A stretch of 64,000 bases of DNA from Oopsacas minuta (Eukaryota > Animalia > Porifera), in the NCBI GenBank assembly GCA_024704765.1, contig JAKMXF010000266.1, positions 496,001 to 560,000 of the forward strand, read 5' to 3'. The number at the start of each line of letters is the position of its first letter. The stretch's first letter is position 1. The notes below the pieces were generated by a model that was not told the DNA's origin, did not search any database, and worked only from the letters and a program-made list of their open reading frames with translations. Of this stretch, positions 8,004 to 31,068 are shown one piece after another. Both the position numbers and the translations under genes were made by a program.

Positions 8004-8764
8004 ATTCCTTATCTCTTTCAATTCTCAATTTACAATCTTTCCCGATGAAATAAGATATATATAAATCTAATGTAATTTGATTGAGTAATATTAACCAAGG
8101 TAGTTTATGATATAGGACTAATGGTGAATGAAACCATGTGTGCAACTTGAGAAGTCTTATGGCAGAAATTACTGCATTGTGATTACACCATGCTGGTAAG
8201 GTTATATATCTGAATTTGTATAGACGCGGGATTAATTCTAAAATTAGCACATAAAGTAGAGGTGTATGCAATATTACTTAAGATGATGAGGCTATTTATA
8301 AATTTATTTCTTTAACATATTTGATGCCATTTATGGATAAATACATTAACTTTAATCTTATAAACAACATATTTGGCTAGGTGGTATGGTATAGGGACGT
8401 TATAAGAACATTCATTACTACCAAGGCGGTTCTTATAACCGACCACTGTATTCCCTTTCACCTTGTATACAGTCGGATCACTGTACTAAACCACTACTAG
8501 CTTTTCTAGCTTTTCCAGTTTTTCCAGGACACATTCATTTATTTTGTGTTTTCAAGAGTACTATCGATAACGTGCATCTATGTTCCGAGTTTTATGTAAT
8601 AACATTTTTTCCGCTTTTCTGAGGAAATAGCGGACATTATTAAACGCGTAGCATATATGTATACATTTATATATCTGCTTTACGTGATTATCACATAACT
8701 GGTTGGGAGAGGGTATATTCATAGGAATGCGTTATAAATTGTAGCATGCACTATAAAGATATAA

Positions 8765-11700
8765 TTACAAATTAAAGGATTCTTGAGAATCTTTATTCTC
8801 ACTCTCCTTATCATCTCCATTGACAAGTTGTTCAATAACGTTATCTTGTAATTCATCAGAGTTTTGTTTCATTAAAGATAATGTATTAGCTCTATGTGTA
8901 AAACTATCATCTTCTGATTCATCTGAATCTTGTTCAATAGATGGACTCGTTATATCTGATCCTCTCTTCAGTGTACCACCCTTTGAATAACTATTAGATG
9001 AGTATGCAGAGCTGCATAACTTTGTACGTGACTGTATAGCACTAGATTGGAATCTCCATACCATTAATCTGGATGCAATCTCGTTCTGTTCAACTGATAC
9101 AACTACCTCTACATCTCCTGATATATGTACAGTGGGTAGAGGTTGTATAGAACGTATCTTACTTCTGCTACAGTGTTGGTAAGCTATAAGAGGACTCTCT
9201 TCTATTACAAGATCACTCACACGAGGAGGTTCCTAAAGTAGGAATCGTATAGACATTGCATAAACCAATTATTTTAGTAGCTATATTGCTAACCGAGTCA
9301 AATAGAATTTAAAATGTTGTAATTTTTGTTCGTTATCAAATTGCAAACCCTAAAAATAGTAGTATTTTCGCATTATTCGGCCTTTTAAACGGTACGTAAC
9401 CCCGGTAGTATAAAGAGTGGTAAAGTACTTTCAATTTTTATAGCAATTAGAATTATACGACGTATAATGGAATTTGCTTCGGGGTTTGGTTCTCAAACAG
9501 TTGCTAATAGGCAAATATATATTGCTAGTATTAAGCTAGTGCTAATAAGCGAACTCTACTGTACATGTATTATTTGTAATTAATATACACCTCATCTTGT
9601 GATTGATATGAATTAACCAATGGAGCTTTCAAAGCATTTCCCACTATAGATTTTCTGCTGCTGAACTGAATGTTCCCAGATCCGCTGTTAGACCGGAACT
9701 TCTCAACCTCTGGTACCAGAGACCGTATCATCACAACATCTAACAGCAATAGAGTCCCTGTCTTAGTCCCCACCCATATAAGGTTACCCTGTGGAGCTAT
9801 TGCAGTCAATTCACTGACCTCCTTTCTGTTGATGTCTGGAAGAATTCTAAAGGTAAGATTTGGTCATGATTACATACTTAGATATCTCATATATTATTAT
9901 TTTTATACAAAAATTACATATATGTAAATCATGTTTATCTTAATAATAATATTATGATTATTACTCATTAGATATTCCTCTGGCTAGAGATTGTACAACT
10001 TTTAGGGAGAGGACGAGAATCTCCTTTTTCTCTAACTTGGTCAAATCATAAATATTGTTATCATAATGTCAACCTACTGTAAATCGAATCTTAGCAATAA
10101 TCTCCCAGTTTCCCAATCCCAAATCCAAATATATGAGCATCTTCTTGCTATTGTCCATATCCATGCGCCGCTAATCACCATGTCTGTTACTGTCTCATTA
10201 GCTACGAATCTGTTACTATTTCTAGTCGAGAAATAGGGTGCTAGTATTTCCTGCTCGCGATGATGAGCTATACCTTTAAATTTTGGTTGTTCTTTCAATG
10301 TTAGAGGGTTTATCACTAGCATTTTATGTCCACAAGCTGCCCATATTAATCCACGTGGAGTTTGGATAATTCCTCTGCATGGCTTATTCTCTTGTAGCAA
10401 TACAGCTTTCTCTCCTAAATTCATATTTGTATAAATGTAACTGTAAATTGGAATACTATCGAAACTGGAATTTGTTTGTGCAATAATTTATGTATGTACA
10501 TATAGCTCTGAATTGTACAGGACATTTGGCCTGTATTTTTGTCTATGAATTGAATCAAATAATCCGATTTTAGCATTACAATAATATACAGCTTGATTCT
10601 AGTTCTCGAGTGTTCGAATGGATCAGATCTACTACTACAGACTACTGTATACATCCAGGGGGAAAATATTGGATATTTCTGGCTCTTTAGCTCATAAGAA
10701 AGGGAAAAAATCGTATTATTTCCTTATAAAATTGGATATCTAGAGAAAATTTTGAGAATCCAGTGATTTCGAGAGTTGGTAAGTATGTATATAGTAATTG
10801 TAATTGGTCATTATGACAACATCCATACATTATTCTACAATATTGACTTATTTAGGGGAATCTCATTAATACGAATTTCCGGATAAGACAAACAAATTTG
10901 ACCGTCAGTTGGTGTTCGTATAAATGAGGTTCCACATAATATCTACCTTCTAATGGATTATGTATAACATCTCCATTCTTCATACCCATAAATACCATGA
11001 TATTACCGTTAGCTAGTCCTACTAACACTCTATACTTTAGCATTTCTAGTCCCTCCTGATCTGGCTTAAGTTCTTTTACACTCTCCCAATTCTTGTCTAT
11101 TGGCATGAGTGAGAGAACTGCATCCTAAAGCACGAATAGTAGGAAAGGTAATTCATTTAGCAGCTGTATGCGACCATCAGAAGGGTAGTGTAGTTTAGGG
11201 TCCTTCCCTTCCCATTTTGTCGAAATGAGAATTTCTAGCATAATTGAATTAAAGGCAAAAGGTGTGAATTATGATTAATCATATCATAACTCTGAATTTC
11301 TAACTTTGAAGGTTCTGCAAATATCAAAATTGGACTCTACGCACCCTATTACCCTGACAACATCTAGCATGCTTTTTGAATTTTACGTAAAATTTGTGAA
11401 AATATGATAAATCAATTTCCTTCCCCAGGTGCAGATCTCCAACTCAAAATGTACATATATATGTACCAATTTTAATGTTAATCGGATTGCTAAATTTGCA
11501 AGGCCGACAGATGGAGGGATATACGTACGTATGTAAGTCACACATCGTCCATGTCATTAAGGCATCTCCCGATGGGAGCTGCGCTAATTAGTCTTACTAA
11601 TACTATTGGCTATTCACCTAATGACCTTGTATTTACCTGTAGTTGCCCACAGTAATAGTTATTCATATCAGGAAGATCATACACATATAGAGCTCCTTTA

Positions 11701-14700
11701 TTCATATTCTCTATTCCTATCCATAATTGATTCGTTGATTCTACTATCTTCATTACAGTTACATTACCAACTGCTTGGAGCTGTTCTGAGTTATGTCTCC
11801 TCTTGTCTGGTTTTGTGAGAGCTCGTATCATACACCTACAGTGAATTTGGGAAAGATGGAAATTTCAAATTTCTTAAATTATTATCCACACTGGTTTTAA
11901 CGAGTGTTGCATCTTACGTTACATGTATTAATGTTTGAAATACAGTCAACCCGTCATATCTAAGCTCAAGGGACCGCGATAATCACTTCAATATAAGCGA
12001 CGAAATTTATGTTACTCTAACGATTTGGGACCATCTTTGTATAATTGTCAGACTCGATTCAAGCTAGTATTTCGAATTATCCGTGTTCGATATAATGGGA
12101 GTTGACTGTAACTTACTTTCCATTTCTTGGGTTAATATGACCAACCAGCAGTCCTCTTGTCCCAGAGGACCAATATAGCTCTGGTTTACGTGTACACACT
12201 ATGCACTGTACATTTATATCAGAGGAGAGAGGAGACCAACCAATCTCTCCAGCACATAGAGTTAGTTTAGAAGCTATCATTGGTAAGTCTAGGATAATTC
12301 TGTTCTTTATGTTCAAGCAATTATCTAGGAAATTAGATTACTGTCAATACTGGTAGGGAGTGGTAGCTAATTATGAACAAACAACAAATCCGGTACTTAT
12401 TCACGTGAACCAGTTCGGATTAGTGAATACTATCACTTTATTACCCTTCAAATGTCACCATGACGTCATGCCGTACGTATTGTAAAATGACTTAAACACA
12501 CTTCCATCAGTCATTTACCGCTTAAAGAATATTGTAGAAAAGGTATGCATATGCCAGTCAGATGTGTATACATCAAAGTGTCGAATACTTTACATATAGT
12601 ATCTTATTATTTCACCGTAAGATTGTACATTTCGGATATGAGAAGCTCACAAATACAATAAACATTTTGACATATTTGTGTCTTTTCCACATATTCTTAC
12701 CTAACAGTGGTTGCATACAGAGACGATGACACGCAGACACTTCTGCTTGTTTTAACTCAAACGTATCAGTAGCAGAGCTATATCCCATCTGTACTGATCT
12801 CCCATCTAATAGATTAGTAGCACTAGTCCTTCTCTTGAAGTTTTCATCATAATTATCATACTCATTCATTTTGTATAGCAAATCAGCTTCTATATTCAGA
12901 TATAACTTAGAGTGTAAAGCTAATCTCATTACTTCCTGTAAGGAGTGTACTCCTTCGAATGGTCTCCAGCCTGTTGATAGCTCGTATAGGAGGAATCCAA
13001 ATTGTAGTAATGGTATCTAATATATACATTATATGACAATGTGAATATTTTCTCGAATCGTTGCAACAAATTAACACAGGATACAGATGGACTAAATTAT
13101 CTCGGAACATGTTATGCTGAATAATATCAAACTACCGTATTCCGGAATTGTTCGTGTATATTTACAATTTTTAGGTTCATGGCTTACAGTAATGCATATC
13201 TTTCCAGATCTACTGTAGGCTAACATTTCTCATAATTACGAATGTGTTGTATTTTTGTGAAAAATACGATCGTATTTCCCGAGAATCCGCTATTTTGTTA
13301 TTGTATATTTTGTCATAATTGTTCTAATTAACTCACTGAAGGTTCTTGTTCAAGTAGTAGATCTTGTTCTATTCTCGTGTTCACCATTGCCTATATATAT
13401 ATATATCTCATAAGTACATACGAGAAATTACCTCGAATAGAGTGTAAACCCTCCAATGATGATATATATGTATCACCTGTGTTTTTGAGTAGTGTGATAT
13501 TCCTGAGTCAGACAGCTTTATCAGCATGGGGTCTTTACAGTGTACTAGGACTGTATCAGAGGTTAATTGGATGTGACATATGTTCTGAACTTCTAGGAAA
13601 AATAATCCTCGAACTACCTAGACACAAATATACTTATTATCAGGATTTTTTTATCAAATATAATCGAAAAACCTAGAATTAAACATACAGAAAATTATTT
13701 TCAAAAATACTACAGACAACCCTCGTTACATCTAAGTTTATAGTATTTTGCATTGTTCTTATATAACGACTAGTTATGCCAGTTACTTGAGTTTCAGTTT
13801 CCACTGTATGCATGAATGTTTGTGGGCTTTCTAGCTACAATGGATCGTGGAACCTCGTTAATACGAATCGAAATTTAGAAATAGAGTATGTTCTACTGTA
13901 TTTCTAAGAGATAATTATTCGACGTTATGTAAAGGATTGACCAATTAACAATACTTACCTGCATAGCTACAGTGTGAGATACTATAGTATCCAATCCTCT
14001 GTTGTTAGAAGTTAGCAGTGTTTTGAGAGAACCATAAGCAGATCTGGCTAGGAGGCATGCAGGTGGATGGAAACTCACTCCAATGAACTTCACAACCTTC
14101 AATATTCAATTAATAAATATATTCACGTATGTAGGCTAGTTTTACTGAATTTAACATACACTCTCGTTAGAAATTTTTAATATACTGTGAGCTTCTCTCA
14201 TTAATTGTTTGTATGGAGACTCAAGTAGTATCTACAAATAATCCAGTAAATTCGGAATACAAGTATTTTGTTCAAAAGTTCAAATCACCAGCTGTTTCAA
14301 TCCTCCAGAAGATTTTTCTATTTCATGTCTGCTCTCAATTGAACAGAAACATCTATGAAAATAACAACTCTCTAATGCCTGTTTTTCCATAAAGACATCT
14401 TCTTGATCCGCACTTCCTTCAAAGAATATGTAATTGCTATCTAGAAATTGTTTATTTGAAACTCTGTTATCACTAATATCTTTTAGCATGTTATTATTAT
14501 TATTATAATGTTGGTCAGGTTGATCTTTTCAAAATATATGCTACAAAACTTACTCTGTGTAAGATTGAGATTAGAAGACATGTCTTTAATAAGTAAGTCT
14601 GGTGCAGCTTCTCTCAGGTCTAACTGAGAGTTAGCAGCAGCAGGACTCAAGCTATGCAGTAGGATATCAGACAATAGTTTTAGTTTGAATGTAGACGGAT

Positions 14701-17700
14701 GTGAGGGACAAGTTTCCTGCATTGGTAGAAGTGTAGAAAGATTATCTACTAATGCGTATACTTCTACCCATGGAATTCCTTTCTCTGTAGTGAAGCATAA
14801 ACCAGGGAAATGCATCTGGATGGTCTAAGAAATTATTTTGATTAAACGTATATTGAAAAACGATTCTCAACAGATTTCCTATACAGCTACAAACAAACCT
14901 GCATGATTGTGTCATGTGCTATTCTGAGTAATCTAGCTTCAACATTATCATTATCAGCATACAAAGATAGTTGGACACCTTGTGAGTTTGTTAAGATACC
15001 AGGTTCCAATGAAGTTTCATCCAAATTACATATCTGTTATATAACATATAATACTGACGTTTGTATACTCTACTTAATCAGAATATCACATAATAGGAAA
15101 TTTCTAGCAAAATGCCAGTGATAAAACCTATAACAAATGACTTTTACAATTCTAACGCTAACGAATGTAATTATTCAGGTACATGATAATTTTTGTTTCC
15201 CGAAGGTGTACGTCTTATCCGAGTTCTACTATATATTGTAAATTATGATGTAAATTAACCTTGAGGTTCCATCCCTGATCTGAGCTGATTACTAGCCCTG
15301 TTGCCCAGTAGTATACCTCTGAGGTAAGATACTCTTTCAGTTCATATCTGACTCCATCGTGAAATATTGTTCCATTAGGTAGACACTTTACTAGATAGCT
15401 CTTTGATATATCATCCATATTCGTTCTAAAATATATGTACGTATCTATACATTGTAGCCTGCACAAACAGGCAGTTCTGGAGGTTCACTTGTATGGGAAT
15501 ATGAATTCGCTATATTTATTCACTCCATTTCAAAAGGTGTCCCGTTTCCACAGGCCCTGTTTGTGGAGATTACACTGTATTTATGATGGTTGAAATGAAC
15601 GTATATTTATGAGTAAAAATAATTATTAATATTATTCATAGCATTTTGAGTAGAGTTCTACATTAACTACACAAGATGTCATCATTACCATTCGCAGAAT
15701 TGGGAGTTATGGGTAGGAAACTTATACAGCTAAAAAGAATCTCATTTCACTACTCAAAAACATTTAACGCTAGTCATGGTATTAGGAAATATCTAGATGG
15801 AGATTTGGTAGCATTTGCTAGCAAGTTTCCTTCAGTAGCAATCTACCTACGTCAAGATGATGGGGAGCCTAGAATAGAGGCAGAGTATCTTTGCGGTACA
15901 AAAAAGACGGTTCCTTTAAAGAAATATACTCCTGAGAAAATAAAGAATGAATTATGGAAGCTACGTTCCGAGTCAGGCATAAACGTGGGTCAAATTGTGA
16001 GATATTGGCACACAACTCGACCGTCTATTCAAGGCAACTGGCACCCATTCATGTTTCCATTCCCAGACAATTCTCAATACTGTATACGAGACCGTGAAGA
16101 TAAGATTAACAATCTGGAGTAATTTAGTATTAGCTATTTAGAATTATTAAATAATATCACTTACCTAAAATCTCTGGGAAGAGAAGAATGGGTAGATTCG
16201 TGTCCACAATATTCTGTTTGTAAGGGAATAGTTTCAAATTGCTCTAGTTTGCTTAGTTCTATCCCTCCAGGTAGAGAAATAGGAAGCAAGTTGGCAAGTA
16301 ACTAAAGATATGAAAATTGTTAATTATAGTCGATTCCTGTTATTTTCAAACTTAAGGGATCACAAAATTTCAGTATAATCACGCAGGCACCAGCTACACT
16401 CGAATAGTGAGTCTTCTACATCTAACTCTAAGTAATGAAGTCTCACTATAACGATAATTAAACTTACCCTCATAAGTAGAATATTCCAGAATCCCAGTGG
16501 TAAGAATCTCATCTTATAAATCCTTTTGCACTTATTGCCTGCTAGGAATGTATCAGCTCCCACCTGTCCATCTTCTGCTCTCTGTACACAGCCTGGGAGA
16601 GTAGTGTCTAACCCAGCTGGCATTATTACGTAGTTTCTTGATAGACGGGTACAAATGTTGTTAGCAGTTAGGAATTTCTAAAAATAAATTATCCTTAGTT
16701 TCTGAAGTGGCTATTATCGCCCCGACCTCTCAGTGGTAATAGCTTCACCCTTACTTTTAACGGTGGGGAATATTTCTTATTCAATTCTCACTTTTCCATG
16801 GAATACCCAGAGACTAAGTTTATATCTATCCAATTAAACGAATCGACGAACTATCATATGGACAGATAAATATTAGTTATACTGTAGTATACTTACAAGA
16901 AACTCTTCTAATACATAGGGTACTTCTTCTTCTTGTACTTCTGTGTCCAATTCATCTTGTAATTGTACTGAATTTGATGATCGTCTTATATACCTCCTGC
17001 TATCCATGATTGCTATATACAGATTATAATAAAATATTTGTGCTTAAGTTTTATCATGCTTTGTTCTTATATTGGTGATTTTTTTGTAATATTTTTGCAC
17101 ATATAATACTGGGCCAAGGCTGTAAAACCTCGATGGCTACAATGATTAATTTCCCGCTAACTATTAAGCATATACAAATACAGTTGTTAACATACAAATA
17201 TTAGTTGGAGCGAATATCATTGCGAGATTGTCTAGTGGTAGAATTCCAGAAGGAAAATTGTTGAAACAATTCCCTCTTCCCATCTGTGAGTGTAGCAATA
17301 TATCTGATAACACATCAGCTAGTAGTTGTAGATTGAAGGATATGTAGCATTGATTCTCTCTTGTCACGTGTTTGAAGAGGAGACCTTCCTATAATTAGAA
17401 ATTACTTAATACCTAACTCCAGCATTTTCTAACTAGGAAAGATCTAATAGTATCAAAAGAGTGGGGGCCAAGACTTGCTATGCAGGGGTCGTTCATACTT
17501 TACTTAACGCTAATTCCCCGAAATTTGCCAAATATTCTGCTCGCATCCTCAACATGTATTCTTAACGTGCTTACATTCACCATATTTTATCGTAATACAT
17601 TAATATGACGACATAATATACTACAAAATACGAATTCGGACATTTCCTCATGGACATATAGATTGATATACCGTGGGAGGTTCCACTGGATTAATTAATT

Positions 17701-20700
17701 AACAGACAAACTTATCGCCAGAATTTGTGAATTTATCATTCATGCATCGTGATGTTATAGATAAGCAACCTCCAAGAAGTGGATAACCTGTCCAATTTGG
17801 GCACCAGGATATATATCTGGGGTCACATAACTCAAACACTCAGTCATCCTTTATATTCAATTTTCACGATTAATGCTTTTATGCAATATTTTGATTACAT
17901 AAGTTCTGCATTATTTTCAAAAAAGATAACAGGCAAAGTATAAATATAACCAGAATAATACCTGCATGCATATACGTATTAGAGAACATATAAATTGCTA
18001 GTCTAGTTGGCCAGATACTCAATGATTCACTAATTAAACTCTTGTGTTCGTCTGCAAGACGAGTAACAATAATACTTGTCTACTATTTTATAGCAGTTAA
18101 CTTTTCAATCAATTATCAAATGGAACACAATCTCCTATGCACTCCAGCAGAGATGGTAGCACATGAACCTTTAGAGAGGACAGCATGTGACTTCTCTAAC
18201 AAGAATACTGTGTTTAGAGTAGAAACACGTAAATACTCACAGCAATACGCTCAGATATACAATGCACGGATGAAAGGGATTAGGGAGAGATTGGAACAAA
18301 CTGCAGAGAAGAAATGGGGTATCAAACCTCTAGTTGAGATAGCAAGTATTATTGAAGGAGAAAGGTATATTACGTAGACTTAATACCTGTATTTATTCGC
18401 TATACAATCAACTCCCCGTTATATCGAAGCCCAAGAAACCGACATAACTTCGGTATAACCGATGATATTTATGTTAATTTTGATAGTTTGGGATTATATT
18501 TATACATTTCAGAATTCGATATATCCATGTTCAATGTAACGGGAGTTGACTGAAGGGATAATTTGCCAAGAAATATATTCCCCAACATTATCACTATAGC
18601 CAATAGAAATACAGTCTTGCAACCTGTTTAGCTTCTACTAACGTATTCCTACTGTATGTATTATTGGTAGAAACCCGATCTTCGTAAGTAATTAAATGTT
18701 CGATAATTCGATTTGCAGTTATTAATAAGGGATTTTGTGGTTTGTAAAATCCCTTCAAACAGGTGCTGTATAGTGGGTAACATCTTCAAAGACATGAGAC
18801 TTAAACCAAGCGTATTAAGAGAGTTGTCAGAAGATCATCACCTTATCCCCCTTCCTCCTCGTAAGAAGTATACTGAGCAAGAGGACTATCTAATCCTAGA
18901 GGATCATTCTCTACGTCTGACTCTTATAACCGATCAAACAGATACAGATACACTTGTTACAGGCGTTCCTGTGGTTATAGTTGGTTGTCAAGAAAACAGA
19001 GGTCGCTTCAAAGTGGAAGAACTGGCATATGCCTCTATCCTAGGTCCTGAGCTATCCATTCCAATACCAGATGATAAATACTTGTTGTTAGTATCAGGCT
19101 TAAACGTGGGAGGAGCGAATACCGACATGTTAAGCCTAGAGCTTCTAATTGACCACCTAACAGGGTGTGGGGGTGGAATACAAGACAGTGAAATAATGTC
19201 TAAAGTTTGTCATGTAATAATCGCCGGTAATCTAATCGCTGATAAATACGTGAGGATAGGTAAGGATAGGAATCAGACTGTGTCCACATTAGAAAGTGTT
19301 AGTACAGCTGATAGTTATCTCTCTCGTATGGTGACATCACTACAAGTTACGTTAATGCCAGGCACGAATGAGCCTGGTAACATCACTCTACCTCAGCAGC
19401 CTCTGTATGAACCAATGTTTCCTAAGTCTATTAGTTATTCTACACTTAATATGGTTACTAATCCTAACTCTATGTCTATTGATGGTAGAACTCTACTAGG
19501 TGAGTAATACTTAGGTATTTAATAGATTATGACATTCTATACAAGGTCATAGCAAGCAGATTTCAATTAGTCAGGTGACCTAAACCAAATATGTATACGG
19601 AGTCACCTAACTTAGTCAGGTTGGGAAATGCTATTTCTATTAACAGTCGAAACGTTGGTCTTGTTAAAATCTGACCACACCAGACAGTCTCCTACGATAA
19701 TGCTTTCTAAGGTTCATACCATGTCCAGCAGTACTAAAAAAGTTCATTTAAATTGTTACAAAGTACCATCGCCGAGGTTAAACAAAATGAGAAGCCTAAA
19801 CGCTTTTAGAGGGATTTCCGATGGAGTTTCCAGTGATATGATATCCACCCAATCTGAGTAACTGTTAAAAGTGTTTCTCTGCTTTGCTACAATCGATCGT
19901 AATCGTAACAAGGCAATAGTGATCGGCAAAATTATGAACTTGTAGGTGTAAATTATATATTAACTTCGCTTAAAATTGATAAAAAAACTGTCCCTAGACT
20001 CTAGAAGTACTGAACTCGCGCCTACGCTCACATTTCTTCTGACCCATTTATTGATTGCTGCAAATCTATAAATTTTTGTTTTACTGCCACAGTTTCCGCG
20101 CTCCTCAACAATATAACCCTGATTAGTTGTGTGTTCATCGTTTCATAGCCCCGATCGTATTTTGTAGACATGTTAATAAATGTAATATGCTTAGGCACAT
20201 CTGGACAGAACATTGATAACATATACAAATTTTGTACAACAGAAGACCGTATGGCTATTCTTGAGAGTACCCTCAAATGGGGTCACATGGCTCCTACAGC
20301 CCCAGAAACACTCAGCTGCTACCCATACGATCATTCACACCTCGAACCGTTTATAATACAACAACTTCCGAATATATATTTCGCAGGGAATCAGCCTGAA
20401 TTCAAATTTAAGTATTACGAGCCTGAAGGGGAAAGTACACTACTTATACTGGTGCCTGATTTTAGCATAGTCAATACGTGTGTACTTGTCAATTTGAAGA
20501 ATCTAGAATGTCATAGCATGAGTTTTGCTACACAGCTTAATTCTAACGGGGATGACAACAACAATCCTATTCCTATGGAGATGTAGTGTTGTAGTGGCAA
20601 CTGTAGTTGGAAGTATTAAATAATAATTAAGCTATTCTTCTTACGTTATTATATGCTATATTTCATTCTTAGAATTTCAGTAAAAGTTGCCAATTTTTGA

Positions 20701-23700
20701 ATTAAAAGTAGAAGTGCTATACAGGGAAGCTGAATTTGTTTTCGGATTATTTGGCGGGATATCTTGGCTGGCGCCGCCAATTAGACCAGTTGGGAGTGGT
20801 GTCCGGACACCCAAGGTGGCAGTGGCACTGGATATGATGGGATTTGAAAAGATTTGATTGATTTGATTTGATTTGAATGAAATATACATCAAATCCACAA
20901 CACTGCATGCCTACAACGTGGTTTAGAATATTTTCTTAAGTTGAATGAAAAGTGATGAACCAGATCGTGCGACCTCTTGTATATTATTATTCTACATAAA
21001 ATTAGAATTAAATTCAATGGCTTGTAATATACAAGAACCCGACGAGGTAGTCTATGTATCAGATATGGAGGATCTTATACATAACACTTTTGATAAAATA
21101 ATATCAAAAGTAAACTTAAGAAGAGAAAAACTAATATCACAATTCAGAGATATACAAACACAGAAAAATGCTATTTTCCAATCAATTGATCAGCTCAAAT
21201 CAGCCAGATCCATTCTACAAGAGAAATTACGGATTAATCCCCTTTCAGCAATACAACAACGAACTACTGCAGATATCGATGGAGCACTAGCTAACCTACA
21301 ATTAGAAGCTAGTATAGAGCACATATTTGTGTGTAATGAGAAGAATTTAGATAATGCTCTAACAAGGCTAGGCGGTTTTGAACTACAACCCAATCAATAT
21401 ATCGCGAAAAGTATCCCAAAGTTTGCATTCGGAGCTGATTCAAAGTCATCCTTACGAAAACCTGTAAGACTTTCTGTTGACGAGTCGTTAGACTTAATCG
21501 CGGTTACTGACAGCATTTCCAAACAAATATATCTATTCTCCCTAGAAGGTAAATATCTCAATTCTTTCGGGAAAGATTATTTTGCGCATCCTTGTGCCAT
21601 TAAAATAATTAATCACAACGAAATACTAGTCACTGATTATCAGAAAGAGGATATGTCATTAATTCAATACGAACGCGGTAAAAAAGAAAAGTTTAAGTTA
21701 AAACTAAAACTAAACGAGAGGAGATGCATTACTTCATTAGATTACGATAAGAACAATAATCAGATATACGCTACAGAATCCATTACACATTCTCTATTGA
21801 TCTTCAATAAAGAATTCAAAATCATTACAGACCTGAATAATCTATTCCTTTTCCCACAAAATGTAGTTATTACCGACACAGAAATATACATACAAGATCA
21901 CAATAATCCTTGTTTTCATATTTTATCAAAATATACACTTGAATTTAGTCGGTCACTTATTTCACGTGGATTACACCTAAGTACTGAATCACCATTAAGT
22001 TTTACTATCGACCAAAAAGGCTGTATTATTATAGGAGATAAATCCGGTGTAATACAAGTGTATGCACCGTCTGGACAGCTGATTCATACCTTCGCTAAGA
22101 AAGGAACAGAACTCGGGGAGGTATATTCACCTACTGGAATATTCGTTAGAAGTAACTATGACGTAATTGTTATATCTAACAGCCCTAATTATCCTATTCA
22201 AGTGTTTTAAAACTGAGTAAAATGTTTATAATTTAAGACCGATATCAGCGTAACCTCTATTATCCGAATGCTGTTTACCAGTCCCAACGAGTTCGGGTAA
22301 GTGAGGTTGTACTTTATTATTTGTATATTTAAATGTGATTTATATTCTGTATTAAGATATTCACGTAAACATATATATACCAGTCATAGTGAAGAAATTG
22401 AGGTGTGGATATTTTAGTGGGACATTGGGATTATTCCGGCACGTAGTATATTCATACTAGCTCGGATATTTCTGCATTCAGGGGGACGTTTTTGCAAGGA
22501 CATGACACTGATTATTGTCGGAAATAGGAGCAGCTGAAAATATTTACTCTATTTGACTAAAAAACGACAATTTAATTAACGCTAATTACGAATCGAAATT
22601 TCCCAAAAATATACACACACTATGCGGCACATTATGCAATGCACGTATTTCTTACTTTTGACATTTATTTTTCTTAAAGAAATCTGCGTTTATAAAATAC
22701 TCACTATTACAGTCAAGGATTTATGGTATTAAACTAGAGAAAATAAAGATTCAGACATACGGATATCGTAGAAATTTACACATAACGAGCTCCGAAAATA
22801 TAATTTATGTATAAACTTTGAGTGAATAAAAATCCTTGCTATTTCCTATTTATACTCGTCGAATTATACAACTATACCTCGTGAAAGAATGTGATCATAT
22901 CTGATACAGCTTCCTTGCTCAAATCATGTCCAATCTCACTCCTTAAGAAACCTGTTCCTCTCAGAGAATGATATATATCATCTGAACATACCAGCGGCTG
23001 AGTGAAGAACTTCTCAAAAGGTTGAATACTACAGCTCTTCTTCTTTATCCTGGTTCTAACGTTCTCCTAATTTGAATACATCCGCTTATACATATAGCAA
23101 TATAGTGTATACAAATTTAGAATTTTATTTAGAAAATACACTTGTACAGGCTACTTACCCTGACTTCTCTGATTCTCTTCTCAAACTCCAAATAGAGCAG
23201 AGGAACACTCTTAGCATAAGCTGCTTGTTCTAATCGAATGCATATATCTTGTGTCAGACGGGCAGTTAGCTTTGGCATACCTTCTCCTACAAAATATCCT
23301 TGAATTTAATCGTATCCAATATTTGTAATTGGTTAAGGACGCTACATGGAGATTTATAATGGGAGTTAGGAACTGTCATAAAATTATTCCTTGTAACGAA
23401 TACGAGTTACCCGTAGTAATATTGAATCAGAAATTGTAATATGCATAGCGTTATGATCGATTTTGACTTTGTCAACTCGCCGATTTTAGAAAGCAACAAT
23501 TACCAAAATCGACAACACATTAACAATATAAGGATACACCATATACTTGTACTTACCAGTTAATGAACTCACAAATTGTACATCTATAACACTTGGTACC
23601 AGATTAACTCCATCTGGATTGACCTTACCCAGTTTACTGGATGGAGACGAGTATACTGAATTTGTCATATCATTTATTAACACTAGATTCATGTCTTTGA

Positions 23701-26700
23701 TGTACTGGCTTATAGAATTTATTATAACTACTTTTTTCGTATCTCTTTCATCCTTCAGTATCTCGTCTAAGTGTGTGAACACTAATACACACGTTAATGA
23801 TCTGTCCTTTTTCCAGGATACAGCTTGTATAGACATTAACAAAACTCTAAGTGGTTCTCTTAGGCTATTTTGAAATTTAATATCTTTCAGGAGTTCTACC
23901 ATATTACACACTATGACGTGGAGACTTGAACTTGGACGGAACATATTGTACAGTGGTTGAAATATCTAAAGATATTCAAACTAATAAAAAGATGATAAAC
24001 TGGAGCCCACTTTGGGGCTTCGAGAACGACTAACCGACTAGTGCACAAAGCCCCCTCTGATTGGAATCTCGCATGGGCCCCCAACCCAGCATGCCCCTGG
24101 GACCTCTATACTAATTTTAACACATTCTGTTGGCCCCTGTTATCGTCCGTAGTAGATCAAGGGAGCCTATGGACCACAGGTTGGGAACCGCTAACATTGT
24201 AGTCAAAGGAAATTCTAATTTATCTCTGACAAATCTCTAAAGCAACTTGCAAAAAATAGTAATTTTACAAAGACAATTGCAATTGTCCTGACCATAAATT
24301 GCCTAATAATCGTTGTCATAGCACTACTGAGAGGCTGATGCACCCTATTGTATATGGTAACGTACTGAATCTCCTGAAAAATCCCAAATATCAAAAAGGG
24401 AATCAAGACGTTTCCAGAATTGTAAAGTTTTCGATCTGGTCTTCCATTCATATATCTTCAATCCTTGTGTCATTCTTTCAGACTTTTGTTGTATTGGTTT
24501 TTCTAATAACTTGTGTATTAGGCTAGTTTTCCCTGACTTACTCAGTCCAATCACAACTATTCTATGTCTGTTCCAAATATTGTTTGAATCGGATAGGTTC
24601 AATTGTGTTAGATATCTATAAGGTATAGAATACGTAAGTGTTTTACTTTTAAAAATTAAAATATAATACTCGCAATTATTGTGAAGAATTAGATACGGTT
24701 GAATCGGGTGTTTTGCCTTTATACGAGCATGACAATACCGGCTCCAACGCGTCGCCCCTATAATCCCTACAACCTATCACTAATAGACCATTAGCGGAAC
24801 ACCACTATATAAATACATTAAGCAGATTATACTGTACTAACGTTCTTATGTTAGTTAGACCGAGATCAGCAATATATCTGGGTGGCGAGATAAGCGGAAG
24901 ATTATCAACATTCAGGAATTTGAGTGTGTTGTTCAGATGTCCATTGAATACTTTAATCTACAGAATATATAGATTAATTCCTGAATAAATTGACACCAGA
25001 AATATTAAGAAATTTTACTGAAATATTTGTATTATGGTACTCACAGGATTATTTGATATGTCCAGATACTCCAGTAGCTTTAGACAGTCCAGTAATGTTA
25101 CTTGTATCTCTTTTAGATTGTTATTCTGTAATTGTAACATCCAAATTTGACATTTACTTTTCTTAAAGAAATCTTCGCCAAATAACCCGAACAAATCTTG
25201 AGAATTACTCGGTGAGATAGCTGATTTGGCGACTTTTAATTCTTTCGTGTTTTGAGTTTCGAAATTTTCTTCCTCAAAACCATAATTTTCCAAATCAATC
25301 GTCAAAATATTGTTATCATTCGCTAGTAAAATTTGTATTTTTGAGCCAAGTATCCAAAAGCCGGGTAGAAATGATAACCGATTATGCGAAATATCTAAGT
25401 ATATTAGATCAGGGGTAGTGTAAATTTCTCTTGGAATGAAGTGTAACTTGTTATTTCGCAGTTTGACTACTGAGAGCTTATGGTAATTGAAGAGATCTAG
25501 CTTTGGGAATAAAATAATTTGGCAAATTTTCGTTATATATTTCCAATATTGGTGAAATAGTTTCTACCTGTTTTGAATGAGAACCATGATGGGTGAAGGC
25601 AACGTAATTTCTTATTACTCCAATCTAATGAAAAAGTAATTGAAAATCGCAGTATATGTGTATTTACAATGCTGGAATTATAGTACAAATGCGGATTAGG
25701 AGAAGCAAGATTGAAGTAGGAATTTTCCCAGAATTTACATGTTGCACAGCGTGTTTCCACGTGTGTTTGTACTTAGTCGTTGTTGGAGTTAGATTTTTGC
25801 AAGGATATCACTAAATATCCCCTATATGTATGTCTTCCTACTTCACAGATTCTAATTTCAAATTTGAGTCAATTCCTACTTGAAGAGTAGGTGATTTTCT
25901 ACAGAAACTAGTTTTGTGATTTGGGTTCAATTCCAAAATTAGAATTTTGTGCCAAGTCCTATCTCGTACAAAATCGACATACACAATGGTATCTACTATA
26001 GGTACCATCCATCAATAGTTTATTACCTATCATTAGTCGTGGAATATACTGTGCTCTACAACCTTCTGTTTTCAACGGTTGCTCCATGTCTTGTGGTTCC
26101 CAGGTGCTGCTATACCTATTGTTAGTTGTATTAGCGTACATTGGCTGCATTGAATATTCATCTGGATTGATAGCTAATTTATTCGTAACCTAAAGTAAGG
26201 TATTATAAATTGGATAGTAAAATATCCCATAATTGAAGCTTAATAGTCATACGTGGTAAGTGTTACTGATTATCTTATCCAGCTTAACTCACCATACAGT
26301 ACTGAATAGCTGGAAATTTGTTAAACAAGCTCATTCCTGCTTGCTTAGCGAATTGTCCTACCACTAACTTTGTTGGATGGAAATCATTGTCGTATAGAGT
26401 ACTTGTAAGCTCGAAGCTGTTGTTACTGAAAGACCATCTGTAGACCTAATGAACATCCATGTAAAATTCTAGAATACGATCCTTTGGCTCGTCGCTTCGC
26501 GATGAACTCGGCGCATTGCGAAACGAGGTATCCATTAACTCTAAATTGACGGCCCCTTTGAGTATTATAATATAGCTATATTTAGAACAATGTAACCTCA
26601 ATTTTGAAATTTTACTTTATGTACCTAAAAGTAAACAAATATTCACAATATGTTGTTTACAATACCATATTCGGACTCAGCATACTGAATACCCCAGGAT

Positions 26701-28222
26701 AGTCGTTGAAAGTATGATTCTACCTTAATTTTGAAATTTGTTTACTTTATATTCATAAAAATAACAATAAATTTACATATGATTAATCCAAAAGTGTGAT
26801 AATCGGATTCAGCATGTTCGATATATTTAGTGAAGTTTTATTGAATTATATTTACTTCTTCGATAAACACAATAAATGCATAGTTATGCAACAACTTCAA
26901 AATTACATACCGTAAATTCTTTCCTTGACAACAGACAAACAAACAGACAACAAATGAGATCTAATAATATAGATTCTACAAGGGACATCCGACATCAGCG
27001 CGGGATATATTGACAACTCGTAAATATTATTTAAGCACCTTTCATCCAAAATTGCCAAATCGTATTATTTTTTAGCATTGGGTTTAGGGATACAATACGT
27101 ATAATACAATATAATAATCATTCCATATACCATACTTACCATATCTAAGTATTTTGCTTTCTCCGTCCCTTTCAGCTAAAAAGTAAAACAATCATCTTAT
27201 ATGCAGCAAGCCAGTACATAATAGCATATTGTTCCTCTGAGATTACCCCATTGTAAATTGTACTTCCAAGTCAACAACAATACACTTACCTTGTTTAATT
27301 TTTGTATAGAAACCAGGCTAGCTATATTAGTTAATATTATATTCTGATATCTGGTTACTATCTCAGCACTTCCAACTTCATAATAAGACAGAGATACTTC
27401 TTGTTTTATACATAGCTCCTACAGGATTATTATTAACATATAAATATGGTAGCTTTATTACGAAAACCGTATTTCTTACGTCTATTGTTTCTGTATCTAA
27501 TATCCTTGCTTCAGGATTTTCTAAGTGTGTTCCTATAAGTGTAATGTGTGCATCTTTGTTGATACGTTTACACTCAACTAGCCATGGTTGTATGTTTTTA
27601 CAGGGTTCCTTGGTAATGAGGTGAAATATATAATTGAAATATACAACATAATAGAATAATTGGTAAATTTATACCCACTCTAATGTTGAGGTCGAATAGA
27701 ATGATGATTATATCTGGTAGTGTTTCAGTGTGTTCCTCTACCAACCCCCTTCCTTCTATCTGCGAAATTGAACATATAATTTATTACCATTCTAAAAACA
27801 TGCTTTTTTTGCAAAATTCACTCTCCTTTGAACACGATAGAGTTCCCACCCGAGATAAACCCAATAATGAAGAAATAATTTTGGCTCCAAGTTGTTGATA
27901 ACTTAACAAGAACTCCAATACAAAACGGTCAAATGTAGAAAAGTCAGTGCTGCATTTCCGTATTTATTATGACTAAGGGAGGATCATTTGATAAATATTC
28001 CCTAATCAGCTGACTGGGTTCGTGATATGACCCTACTCACAGAGAACTTACGAAATTGACATGTATACTCTCTGAGAGGAGGTTGACTTGATGAGGAGTG
28101 ACTCTCGTGATTTCTTGTATTGCTCGTCTCTATAATGCAATTATGTGTAGTAATTAGTAATGCGTGATAAATACAATAATAATATCCGTATAACATATCT
28201 CTTCAAATTACCTAATAATCAT
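8765..28222 (-). CDS. LRRK-like ROCO protein, multi-exon: degenerate N-terminal G-like domain - LRR - ROC - COR - pseudokinase - WD40
   Basis: Most hand-spliced GT-AG exons join in frame. LRR exon ~25030-25497 (LRNNKLHFIP, LDISHNRL); ROC exon 24366-24615 (GLSKSGKT, WDFSG); 23557-23965 (FTHLD, VSSLTG|EG); 23159-23286; COR 22878-23066 joined to 17196-17388 (FFHE|EGLLF); COR motif RIYKMRFLPLGFWNILLMR ~16480-16530; HFPGL and APDLL ~14580-14820; kinase exons ~12700-14400; WD40-type exons 8765-12320. The start at 28222 and a few small exons are uncertain. Confidence 0.88.
11941..12110. mobile_element. pogo/Tc1-type MITE (TACAGTCAAC...GTTGACTGTA)
   Basis: Imperfect TIRs with TA flanks; a related copy lies at 18403-18553. 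Confidence 0.7.
15676..16122 (+). CDS. MRPL43: Mitochondrial ribosomal protein L43, intronless, nested antisense in a 739-nt intron of the LRRK-like gene
   Basis: L51/S25/CI-B8 fold pattern (S-x-GIRKYL...FASKFPSV...PRIEAEY) and C-terminal TTRPSIQGNWHPF; ATTAAA about 25 nt after the stop. Confidence 0.9.
   Translation: MSSLPFAELGVMGRKLIQLKRISFHYSKTFNASHGIRKYLDGDLVAFASKFPSVAIYLRQDDGEPRIEAEYLCGTKKTVPLKKYTPEKIKNELWKLRSESGINVGQIVRYWHTTRPSIQGNWHPFMFPFPDNSQYCIRDREDKINNLE
18120..20586 (+). CDS. POLD2: DNA polymerase delta subunit 2; exons 18120-18364, 18763-19499, 20195-20586 (457 aa)
   Basis: Motifs YSQQYAQIYNAR, CCIVGNIFKDMRLKPSVL, MPGTNEPGNITLPQQP, G|TSGQNIDNI, WGHMAPTAPETLSCYPY, PNIYFAGNQ; all junctions GT-AG and in phase. 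Confidence 0.95.
18403..18553. mobile_element. MITE of the same family as 11941-12110, in POLD2 intron 1
   Basis: TACAATCAACTCCCCGTTATATCG...AACGGGAGTTGACTG termini. Confidence 0.6.
21017..22210 (+). CDS. Coiled-coil + NHL-repeat beta-propeller protein (TRIM-NHL-like C-terminal half, no RING/B-box seen), intronless
   Basis: N-terminal coiled coil followed by NHL repeats (KPVRLSVDE..LIAVTD; FAHPCAI; PLSFTIDQKGCIIIGD; YSPTGIFV). ATG at 21017 preferred over 20945. Confidence 0.8.
   Translation: MACNIQEPDEVVYVSDMEDLIHNTFDKIISKVNLRREKLISQFRDIQTQKNAIFQSIDQLKSARSILQEKLRINPLSAIQQRTTADIDGALANLQLEASIEHIFVCNEKNLDNALTRLGGFELQPNQYIAKSIPKFAFGADSKSSLRKPVRLSVDESLDLIAVTDSISKQIYLFSLEGKYLNSFGKDYFAHPCAIKIINHNEILVTDYQKEDMSLIQYERGKKEKFKLKLKLNERRCITSLDYDKNNNQIYATESITHSLLIFNKEFKIITDLNNLFLFPQNVVITDTEIYIQDHNNPCFHILSKYTLEFSRSLISRGLHLSTESPLSFTIDQKGCIIIGDKSGVIQVYAPSGQLIHTFAKKGTELGEVYSPTGIFVRSNYDVIVISNSPNYPIQVF
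26476..26973 (-). mobile_element. Non-autonomous Helitron/Helentron-like element in an LRRK-like intron
   Basis: 5' A|TCTATATTATTAGATCTC...GTCTGTTTG; 3' GC-rich hairpin (GCGAAGCGACGAGCCAAAGGATCGT); ~380 nt shared with 38170-38553. Confidence 0.6.
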
Positions 28223-30458: not shown

Positions 30459-31068
30459 GTGTCTAATCAACTCTTTTGAAAGTTGTAATTTTTGGAGATG
30501 GTGGAGTTGGTAAATCTTCATTAATGACTCAATATATAGAGAATAAATTCGAGACAGGTTACTATTACACAGTTGGAGTTGAGTTTTGAATAAAGATATA
30601 TTTTATCTTGGAAACTCATACACATTGCAGATATGGGATACAGCTGGTCAGGAGAGATTTAAGAGTCTAAGAACACCATTCTACAGAGGAGCTGATTGCT
30701 GTATTCTGACTTTCGCAGTCAACGACAAGCAATCCTTTGCAAATATTGATTTCTGGAAAAAAGAATTTTTATACTATGCGGATATAAGAGATACCAATAA
30801 TTTCCCTTTTATAGTAATCGGGAATAAGATAGATTTAGGACAGGAAAGAACAGTGAGTGAAGAAGAAGCGAGTATTTGGTGTGGCAATCAATCTATTCCT
30901 TATTACCAGACATCAGCTAAAACATCAGAGAATGTTAATATAGCATTTTTTCATGCATTAGAGATTTTCGCAGGTTCTGCGCCAGGTCAGAAAATTGAGA
31001 AATATCAATCAGTGAATTTATCTACCTAAACAGACTCAGGGAAAAATGAAAGAGATTGCACTTGTTAG
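30459..31068 (+). pseudogene. Disabled Rab9 paralog
   Basis: Start is GTG rather than ATG (30459); 1-nt deletions at ~30465 and ~30584 relative to the 33957 copy; in-frame TAA at 31027-31029 followed by TDSGKNERDCTC-stop (vestigial CxC motif). Confidence 0.8.

Follow-up and report, generated by a model that had tools for sequence, protein, structure and literature searches.

The 64,000-nucleotide window analysed here (contig JAKMXF010000266.1 of the glass sponge Oopsacas minuta, positions 496,001 to 560,000; AT-rich eukaryotic DNA with a GC content of about 0.35) carries on its minus strand a long, multi-exon gene related to those of the leucine-rich repeat kinases LRRK1 and LRRK2. The reading that we favour, with a probability of about 0.8, is that it encodes an expressed, selectively maintained and catalytically dead LRRK-type ROCO pseudokinase, in which a leucine-rich repeat (LRR) region, a ROC GTPase, a region at the position of COR, a kinase-like domain and a WD40 propeller follow one another. 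The exons of the gene were drawn from three-frame translation and splice signals. The kinase-like domain is encoded by six of them, K1 to K6 (12701-14440, minus strand; Table 1), and the set comprising the pre-kinase exon, K1-K6 and the next exon has GT-AG boundaries throughout and compatible phases.

The residues required for phosphotransfer are replaced at nearly every expected place. The string ICHIQLTSDT (13552-13581, exon K4) stands where the catalytic loop is expected, DSG (13501-13509, exon K4) takes the place of DFG or DYG, with Ser for the Phe/Tyr and the Asp present in the window, and the glycine-rich loop is represented by the acidic, glycine-poor FEGSADQEDV (14394-14423, exon K1). 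A phmmer search against solved structures placed K4 ICHIQLTSDTVLV opposite LRRK1 IIFCDLKSDNILV and Rad53 ISHRDLKPDNILI, with H-I/T-Q-L-T-S-D-T aligned to FCDLKSDN of LRRK1 and HRDLKPDN of Rad53, and LSDSGIS aligned to LSDYGIS and ITDFGLA, respectively. This alignment puts Gln in place of the catalytic (HRD) Asp, Thr in place of both the catalytic-loop Lys and the metal-binding Asn, and Ser in place of the Phe/Tyr of DFG. The beta-3 Lys is absent from its expected position, which is occupied by CYFHR (14352-14366), the exact alignment of the residue being uncertain. The APE motif is likewise absent. Judged from the sequence, the phosphotransfer machinery has been lost, with the HRD Asp, the catalytic-loop Lys and Asn, the glycine-rich loop and the beta-3 Lys all missing.

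Four sequencing runs (X1-X4, none of them recorded as RNA) were mapped to 12600-14900; they date from 2023, and their Nextera and TruSeq adapters agree with the libraries reported for the Oopsacas genome (PMC10280926). Contigs of run X4 are spliced at 13016>13337, 13390>13477, 13617>13959, 14096>14160, 14231>14289 and 14440>14554, where the plus strand reads CT..AC, that is, GT..AG on the gene strand, and another X4 contig contains the joint 12701>12324. The joints correspond exactly to the modelled exons, including the small and uncertain exon K5, and no others were reported. Depth in exon bins is mostly 2.5-8 times that in intron bins, and the four runs show zero differing letters and zero indels against the region. 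The gene is confirmed to be expressed and spliced as modelled, with the proviso that contigs may drop rare isoforms and that a minor alternative form is possible. None of the six frames of 12600-14900 contains a GxGxxG, VAxK, HRD-like or DFG-like motif, and thus no hidden exon that could restore activity is present. The strings quoted in the first-pass annotation were all found on the minus strand at the places that it gave, and its ROC motifs GxxxxGKT, DxxG and THLD are present as GLSKSGKT, DFSG and THLD; its reading of the domain after splicing was right, since the X4 joints match the exons and are all GT..AG; and the degeneracy that it described in the catalytic loop, DFG, glycine-rich loop and beta-3 Lys is borne out by the phmmer alignment and the six-frame motif scan. 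Alternative exons restoring HRD, DFG or VAVK, which it had named beforehand as the refuting observation, are found neither among the X4 joints nor in the frames of 12600-14900.

Homologues were sought exon by exon. An exhaustive HMMER search with K6 over 1.84 billion representatives gave five matches, all of them short open reading frame (ORF) fragments; neither a full-length LRRK nor an annotated protein of this gene was among them. Two further matches came from a profile word search. Orthologous loci are found in five genomes, designated L001 (ERZ25069837), L002 (ERZ25072740), L003 (ERZ20067936), L009 (ERZ25072730) and L010 (ERZ25766962), with L006 and L007 as upstream extensions of L001 and L002, respectively. 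A second long contig of assembly ERZ25072740 (L008) encodes a protein identical to that of L007 at the exons compared (LRR end, ROC, K1, K4 and K6) and represents either a haplotig or a second genome that is very close, for which reason it does not enter the count of species. Exon-wise tblastn recovered the pre-kinase exon and K1-K6 in identical order in 5/5 loci, with AG/GT flanks at the same codon positions, and all five share with the window an antisense POLD2-type gene upstream of the kinase exons as well as a small L51_S25_CI-B8 gene. Intron lengths vary widely, the K4-K5 intron measuring 86, 1619, 52, 66, 351 and 237 nucleotides in the six genomes. The longest of these belongs to L001, where a DDE_3 transposase-like ORF (218 amino acids, weak Pfam match; 8505-9161, minus strand) lies inside the intron and swells it to 1619 nucleotides, as compared with 52-351 elsewhere.

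In the six-genome alignment, the strings QNICH[IT]QLTSDTVL, IKLS[DE][SA]GIS, CYFxR (including its Arg), EQDLLLxxEPS and QFGxLLYExSTGxRPFEG are invariant, and the alpha-F Asp is lost throughout this glass-sponge set. The glycine-rich loop differs between species (FEGSADQEDV, FEGSIEQ-NV, FEGKEEPPQV and DDGTVDLEED). The Asp of DFG is kept in 5/6 genomes, being replaced by Glu in L001 and by His in a more distant homologue, L004, and this variation argues that it is not selected as a metal ligand.

The Nei-Gojobori method, applied to the six genomes with K1-K6 summed, gave proportions of synonymous differences (pS) of 0.49-0.80, near saturation of the synonymous sites, and proportions of non-synonymous differences (pN) of 0.08-0.24. 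The ratio of non-synonymous to synonymous rates (dN/dS) in the three least saturated pairs is 0.115, 0.088 and 0.077. Values of pN are 0.06-0.17 for the catalytic-loop exon K4, 0.19-0.48 for the N-lobe exon K1, which is the fastest-evolving part, 0.11-0.26 for the ROC exons and 0.055-0.15 for the WD40 exons; the dead kinase-like domain is thus about as constrained as the ROC GTPase. The constraint is centred on the C-lobe and the former catalytic loop; the ATP-binding N-lobe shows a relaxation. The first-pass annotation's proposal of a ROCO pseudokinase with an intact-looking ROC is well supported: all six genomes carry the losses, fixed under purifying selection, the X4 contigs bear out the exon model, and G1, G3 and G4 of the ROC do not vary among the four species examined.

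A homologue with 46-53% identity in K6 is encoded by two TARA metagenome scaffolds of a marine eukaryote, L004 (GC content 0.52) and L005. The homologue (L004 1-2212, and L005) is compact, with fused exons, and its contiguous ORF in L004 includes a clear LRRK2-type propeller (PF23748; 51.1 bits, cut-off 26.9). The kinase-like domain of L004 has the loop VTYHAINSDN, in which the Asp is changed to Ala and the Lys to Asn with the Asn kept, HCG for DFG, and FGGVAPPPSE as the glycine-rich loop; the alpha-F Asp is kept (DYMLLG). This domain is also predicted to be dead, by different substitutions. Catalysis was lost either before the lineages of the glass-sponge set and L004 split, or twice.

Assignment to the LRRK family is based on several parts of the protein. 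The LRR region (25018-25563) was recognised by Pfam as LRR_8 (E=1.5e-10) and LRR_4 (E=5.6e-7), and the frame 24348-24773 as Roc (PF08477; 39.2 bits against a cut-off of 27, E=9.6e-10), with G1 and G3 within the aligned part. The top PDB matches of ROC exon a are LRRK2 ROC structures (E=1.3e-4), and the motifs G[LSM]xx[SA]GKT, DIWDFSG and FTHLD show no variation among the four species whose sequence covers the region. K4 was matched by the Pfam family PK_Tyr_Ser-Thr (E=8e-4), and its four-species profile placed LRRK1 first among PDB entries (E=8e-5), the next kinase following at 0.07. K6 can be aligned with the MLKL and MLK1 C-lobes, and the top solved match of its profile is the C-lobe of the MLKL pseudokinase (E=0.0019). 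The sole PDB match of the K3 profile, JAK2 PYGSLRDYL, is non-significant (E=2.2); an apparent WD40 match to K3 was rejected as a repeat-summing artefact of 1-3 bits per repeat. The propeller exons of the window match Pfam PF23748 (Beta-prop_LRRK2) below its cut-off (E=0.0065 and 0.031). The overall architecture is probably LRRK-like, with LRR, Roc and kinase-like domains detected, COR assigned by position and the propeller of the window below threshold.

Several observations weigh against this interpretation. A PDB sequence search detected no solved chain similar to ROC exon b, the half that contains THLD, the COR-position exons have no Pfam match singly, and the four-species profile of the best-conserved of them finds no ROCO structure. 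The N-lobe exons K1 and K2 have no kinase match in Pfam or PDB, searched exon by exon, so that of the retained fold claimed in the first-pass annotation, which pointed to REAHSILKISNES (the end of exon K2), VVKFIGV (the start of exon K3) and other strings, the part that the sequence supports is the C-lobe, through similarity in exons K4 and K6, the match of K3 being non-significant. An AlphaFold2 model of K6 alone, built from a four-sequence alignment, is of low confidence, with a mean local confidence score (pLDDT) of 49. The transcript support consists of contigs from a single run of unrecorded library type. In addition, some proteins that lack canonical residues still catalyse or bind nucleotide.

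The most probable of the rival explanations, which we nevertheless consider unlikely, is that the protein is a pseudokinase which still binds ATP or ADP as an allosteric ligand, as do STRAD-alpha or the JH2 domain of JAK, with nucleotide occupancy controlling its conformation. A retained ligand pocket would be consistent with how very strongly the former catalytic loop and the strand flanking DSG are conserved, and with the persistence of the alpha-C Glu and of an invariant basic residue close to beta-3. However, the glycine-rich loop is acidic, glycine-poor and variable between species, the N-lobe exon K1 evolves fastest, with pN reaching 0.48, and both the Asn that binds metal and the Asp of DFG have been lost or vary.

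An unconventional yet active kinase with relocated or substituted residues, for example with the CYFxR Arg in place of the beta-3 Lys and another acidic residue as the base, is highly improbable. There is a precedent in WNK, an active kinase with a displaced lysine, and the candidates for such substitutions are well conserved: the CYFxR Arg, the LTSDT Asp and the alpha-C Glu are invariant, and the DFG Asp is present in most genomes. But five catalytic elements have been lost together, namely the HRD Asp, the Lys and Asn of the catalytic loop, the beta-3 Lys and the glycine-rich loop; the LTSDT Asp is also found in active LRRK1 (KSDN), and therefore characterises the family instead of being a relocated base; and besides the replacement of the DFG Asp in L001 and L004, both APE and the alpha-F Asp are gone. 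A decaying pseudogene, or dead motifs arising as an artefact of assembly or exon prediction while the true transcript uses other exons, is scarcely credible and is rejected in each form in spite of the weak scores of single exons against kinase models and the want of an annotated protein among the K6 HMMER matches: decay is ruled out by purifying selection (dN/dS of about 0.1), expression, frames that are all open and GT-AG signals conserved in six genomes; hidden alternative exons by the RNA joints, which use exactly the modelled exons, and by the six-frame scan, which found no motif-bearing intron ORF; and sequencing error by the lack of variants in four runs.

Under the interpretation of the gene as a dead ROCO pseudokinase, the kinase-like domain would no longer bind or use ATP and would persist for structural reasons, rigidly bridging ROC-COR and the C-terminal propeller and offering a docking surface between them. 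The remaining switch would be the guanine-nucleotide state on ROC, which would set the state of the scaffold; a role as a GTP-switched scaffold is plausible, GTP binding being suggested by the ROC motifs. In the structures of LRRK1 and LRRK2, the kinase N-lobe touches COR-B and the C-lobe packs against WD40, and the proposal of a bridge is made by analogy with these contacts. The distribution of constraint, which is highest on the C-lobe and the first propeller exon and lowest on the ATP-binding N-lobe, fits this proposal.

A broader and doubtful extension is that the complete LRRK architecture may long have been retained, in glass sponges and in one or more other marine lineages (TARA L004, L005), for a role that involves no catalysis at all. 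If any other LRRK-like paralogues were also dead, there would be no active LRRK in the lineage, and the core function would be GTP-controlled scaffolding, for example on microtubules or on the membranes of syncytial tissue, and not the phosphorylation of Rab proteins; the former catalytic loop, which no other stretch of the kinase-like domain exceeds in conservation, might have been re-used as a binding surface. A profile word search with ROC returned orthologues only and located no paralogues.

Table 1. Exons of the LRRK-like gene in the 64,000-nucleotide window
Feature	Coordinates	Strand	Characteristics
LRR exon upstream of ROC	25036-25557	-	Pfam LRR_8; 75-78% identity in relatives
ROC exon a	24366-24615	-	P-loop GLSKSGKT 24525-24548; DFSG 24372-24383; Pfam Roc
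ROC exon b	23557-23965	-	THLD 23765-23776
COR-position exons between ROC and kinase (eight; span 14896-23293)	~23150-23293, 22875-23066, 17191-17388, 16885-17034, 16462-16677, 16164-16301, 15251-15469, 14896-15033	-	conserved by tblastn
Pre-kinase exon	14554-14824	-	end of COR-like region and linker, ...APDLLIKDMSSNLNLTQ; phase-1 donor; 61-75% kept in five other genomes; joint in X4 contigs
K1, N-lobe	14289-14440	-	degenerate glycine-rich loop and CYFHR; RNA joints at both ends; no kinase match by sequence
K2, alpha-C region	14160-14231	-	...LMREAHSILKISNES; acidic residue kept; RNA joints at both ends
K3, beta4-5, hinge and alpha-D/E	13959-14096	-	YGSLKTLL; 61-78% identity in relatives
K4, catalytic-loop exon	13477-13617	-	ICHIQLTSDT and DSG; 79-87% identity, the best-conserved kinase exon
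K5, activation-segment remnant	13337-13390	-	18 codons; TRxEQDLLLxxEPS, no APE; AG/GT kept in 5/5 relatives; RNA joints at both ends
K6, alpha-F to alpha-I	12701-13016	-	FGFLLYELSTGWRPF, QFGFLLYELSTGWRPFEG and KRRTS; alpha-F Asp lost (IPLLQFG); 68-77% identity in relatives
First post-kinase exon, start of beta-propeller region	12117-12324	-	RNA contig with joint to K6; 84-89% identity; pN 0.055-0.11
Remaining C-terminal exons, WD40/LRRK2-type propeller and acidic tail (8768-11864)	~11622-11864, 10939-11124, 10077-10427, 9588-9860, 8768-9232	-	conserved; weak Pfam Beta-prop_LRRK2

The structure of ROC exon b differs between the genomes. In the window it has no intron after ...THLDEILK (23750-23760), while one of about 70-630 nucleotides is present in 4/4 related loci examined (for example L003 1041-1121, L006 12570-12640 and L007 13774-14406); the difference is a lineage-specific loss or gain. 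Further conserved exons lie upstream of the LRR exon (26022-28129, minus strand), and one of them reads ...HITLIGTHLENPEA, a second THLD-like stretch (LIGTHLE).

The introns between the COR-position exons contain nested antisense genes. An intron-less ORF of 148 amino acids (15676-16122, plus strand) belongs to the L51/S25/CI-B8 mitochondrial-ribosomal family (Pfam PF05047, 28.7 bits); at the matching place L51_S25_CI-B8 is found as an ENA gene call in L002, L003, L009 and L010, and in L001 by sequence conservation, not by a Pfam call. The large intron at ~17400-22900 holds antisense POLD2-type (DNA_pol_E_B) and NHL-repeat genes; ENA gives a POLD2-type gene call at the matching place in 5/5 related loci, and in L002/L007 an NHL call lies upstream of that gene. 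Outside these introns, a conserved Rab-like small GTPase (GDGGVGKSS ... WDTAGQERF) is encoded at 30467-31023 on the plus strand, and is 80% identical to an L006 ORF called Ras/Roc/Arf by Pfam.

LRRK2 is a major drug target in Parkinson's disease, and the extent of its kinase-independent biology is debated; kinase-dead and inhibitor-bound LRRK2 differ in behaviour, for example on microtubules. A kinase-like domain which is dead, yet expressed and conserved over at least six genomes, would indicate that the LRRK architecture can be kept for a job besides phosphorylation. Such a natural LRRK-type protein, in which catalysis appears to have been lost long ago and the ROC, the propeller and the kinase-like C-lobe are still strongly constrained, amounts to an evolutionary experiment, and its conservation flags candidate surfaces for a non-catalytic role, namely the former catalytic loop, the region from alpha-F to alpha-I and the first propeller blades. 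It would also bring sponges into the LRRK story and add a pseudokinase class to the ROCO family. A review of Roco proteins distinguishes three groups, consisting of LRR-RocCOR only, of those with a kinase and of DAPK1, and the term pseudokinase does not occur in it (PMC6337361); a phylogeny of LRRK defines the clades LRRK1-4 from vertebrates, echinoderms, spiralians, arthropods, nematodes and cnidarians, plus amoebae, with sponges unmentioned (PMC10643122). No published description of such a ROCO/LRRK pseudokinase or of the sponge protein was found by full-text literature search, although absence there is not proof.

Among known systems, LRRK1 and LRRK2 (group-2 Roco) resemble the sponge gene in the order of their modules, with LRR, Roc (GxxxxGKT / DFxG / THLD), a long COR-position region, a kinase-like domain of the tyrosine kinase-like (TKL) type and a C-terminal LRRK2-type propeller, which in the window itself scores below threshold. 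LRRK2 is nearest to the ROC exon of the window and LRRK1 to K4, both of the latter having the KLSDxGIS strand and an SD in the catalytic loop. However, unlike either of these, the sponge gene lacks the catalytic kinase residues across six genomes, its N-lobe is unrecognisable by sequence, and its N-terminal region is not ARM/ANK by the tests run and has a second GTPase-like stretch (LIGTHLE). MFHAS1/MASL1 and other group-1 Roco proteins are comparable in acting without kinase activity, presumably as GTP-regulated scaffolds (PMC6337361), but group-1 proteins lack the kinase domain and the propeller, and the sponge gene keeps a kinase-like domain and a WD40 region in strongly conserved form. Dead kinases of the TKL group, such as those of the MLKL, KSR and IRAK type, have likewise lost catalytic residues and conserve the fold as a conformational switch or scaffold; they have no domain context in common with the sponge protein, and the likeness is that of a generic TKL C-lobe, not of orthology.

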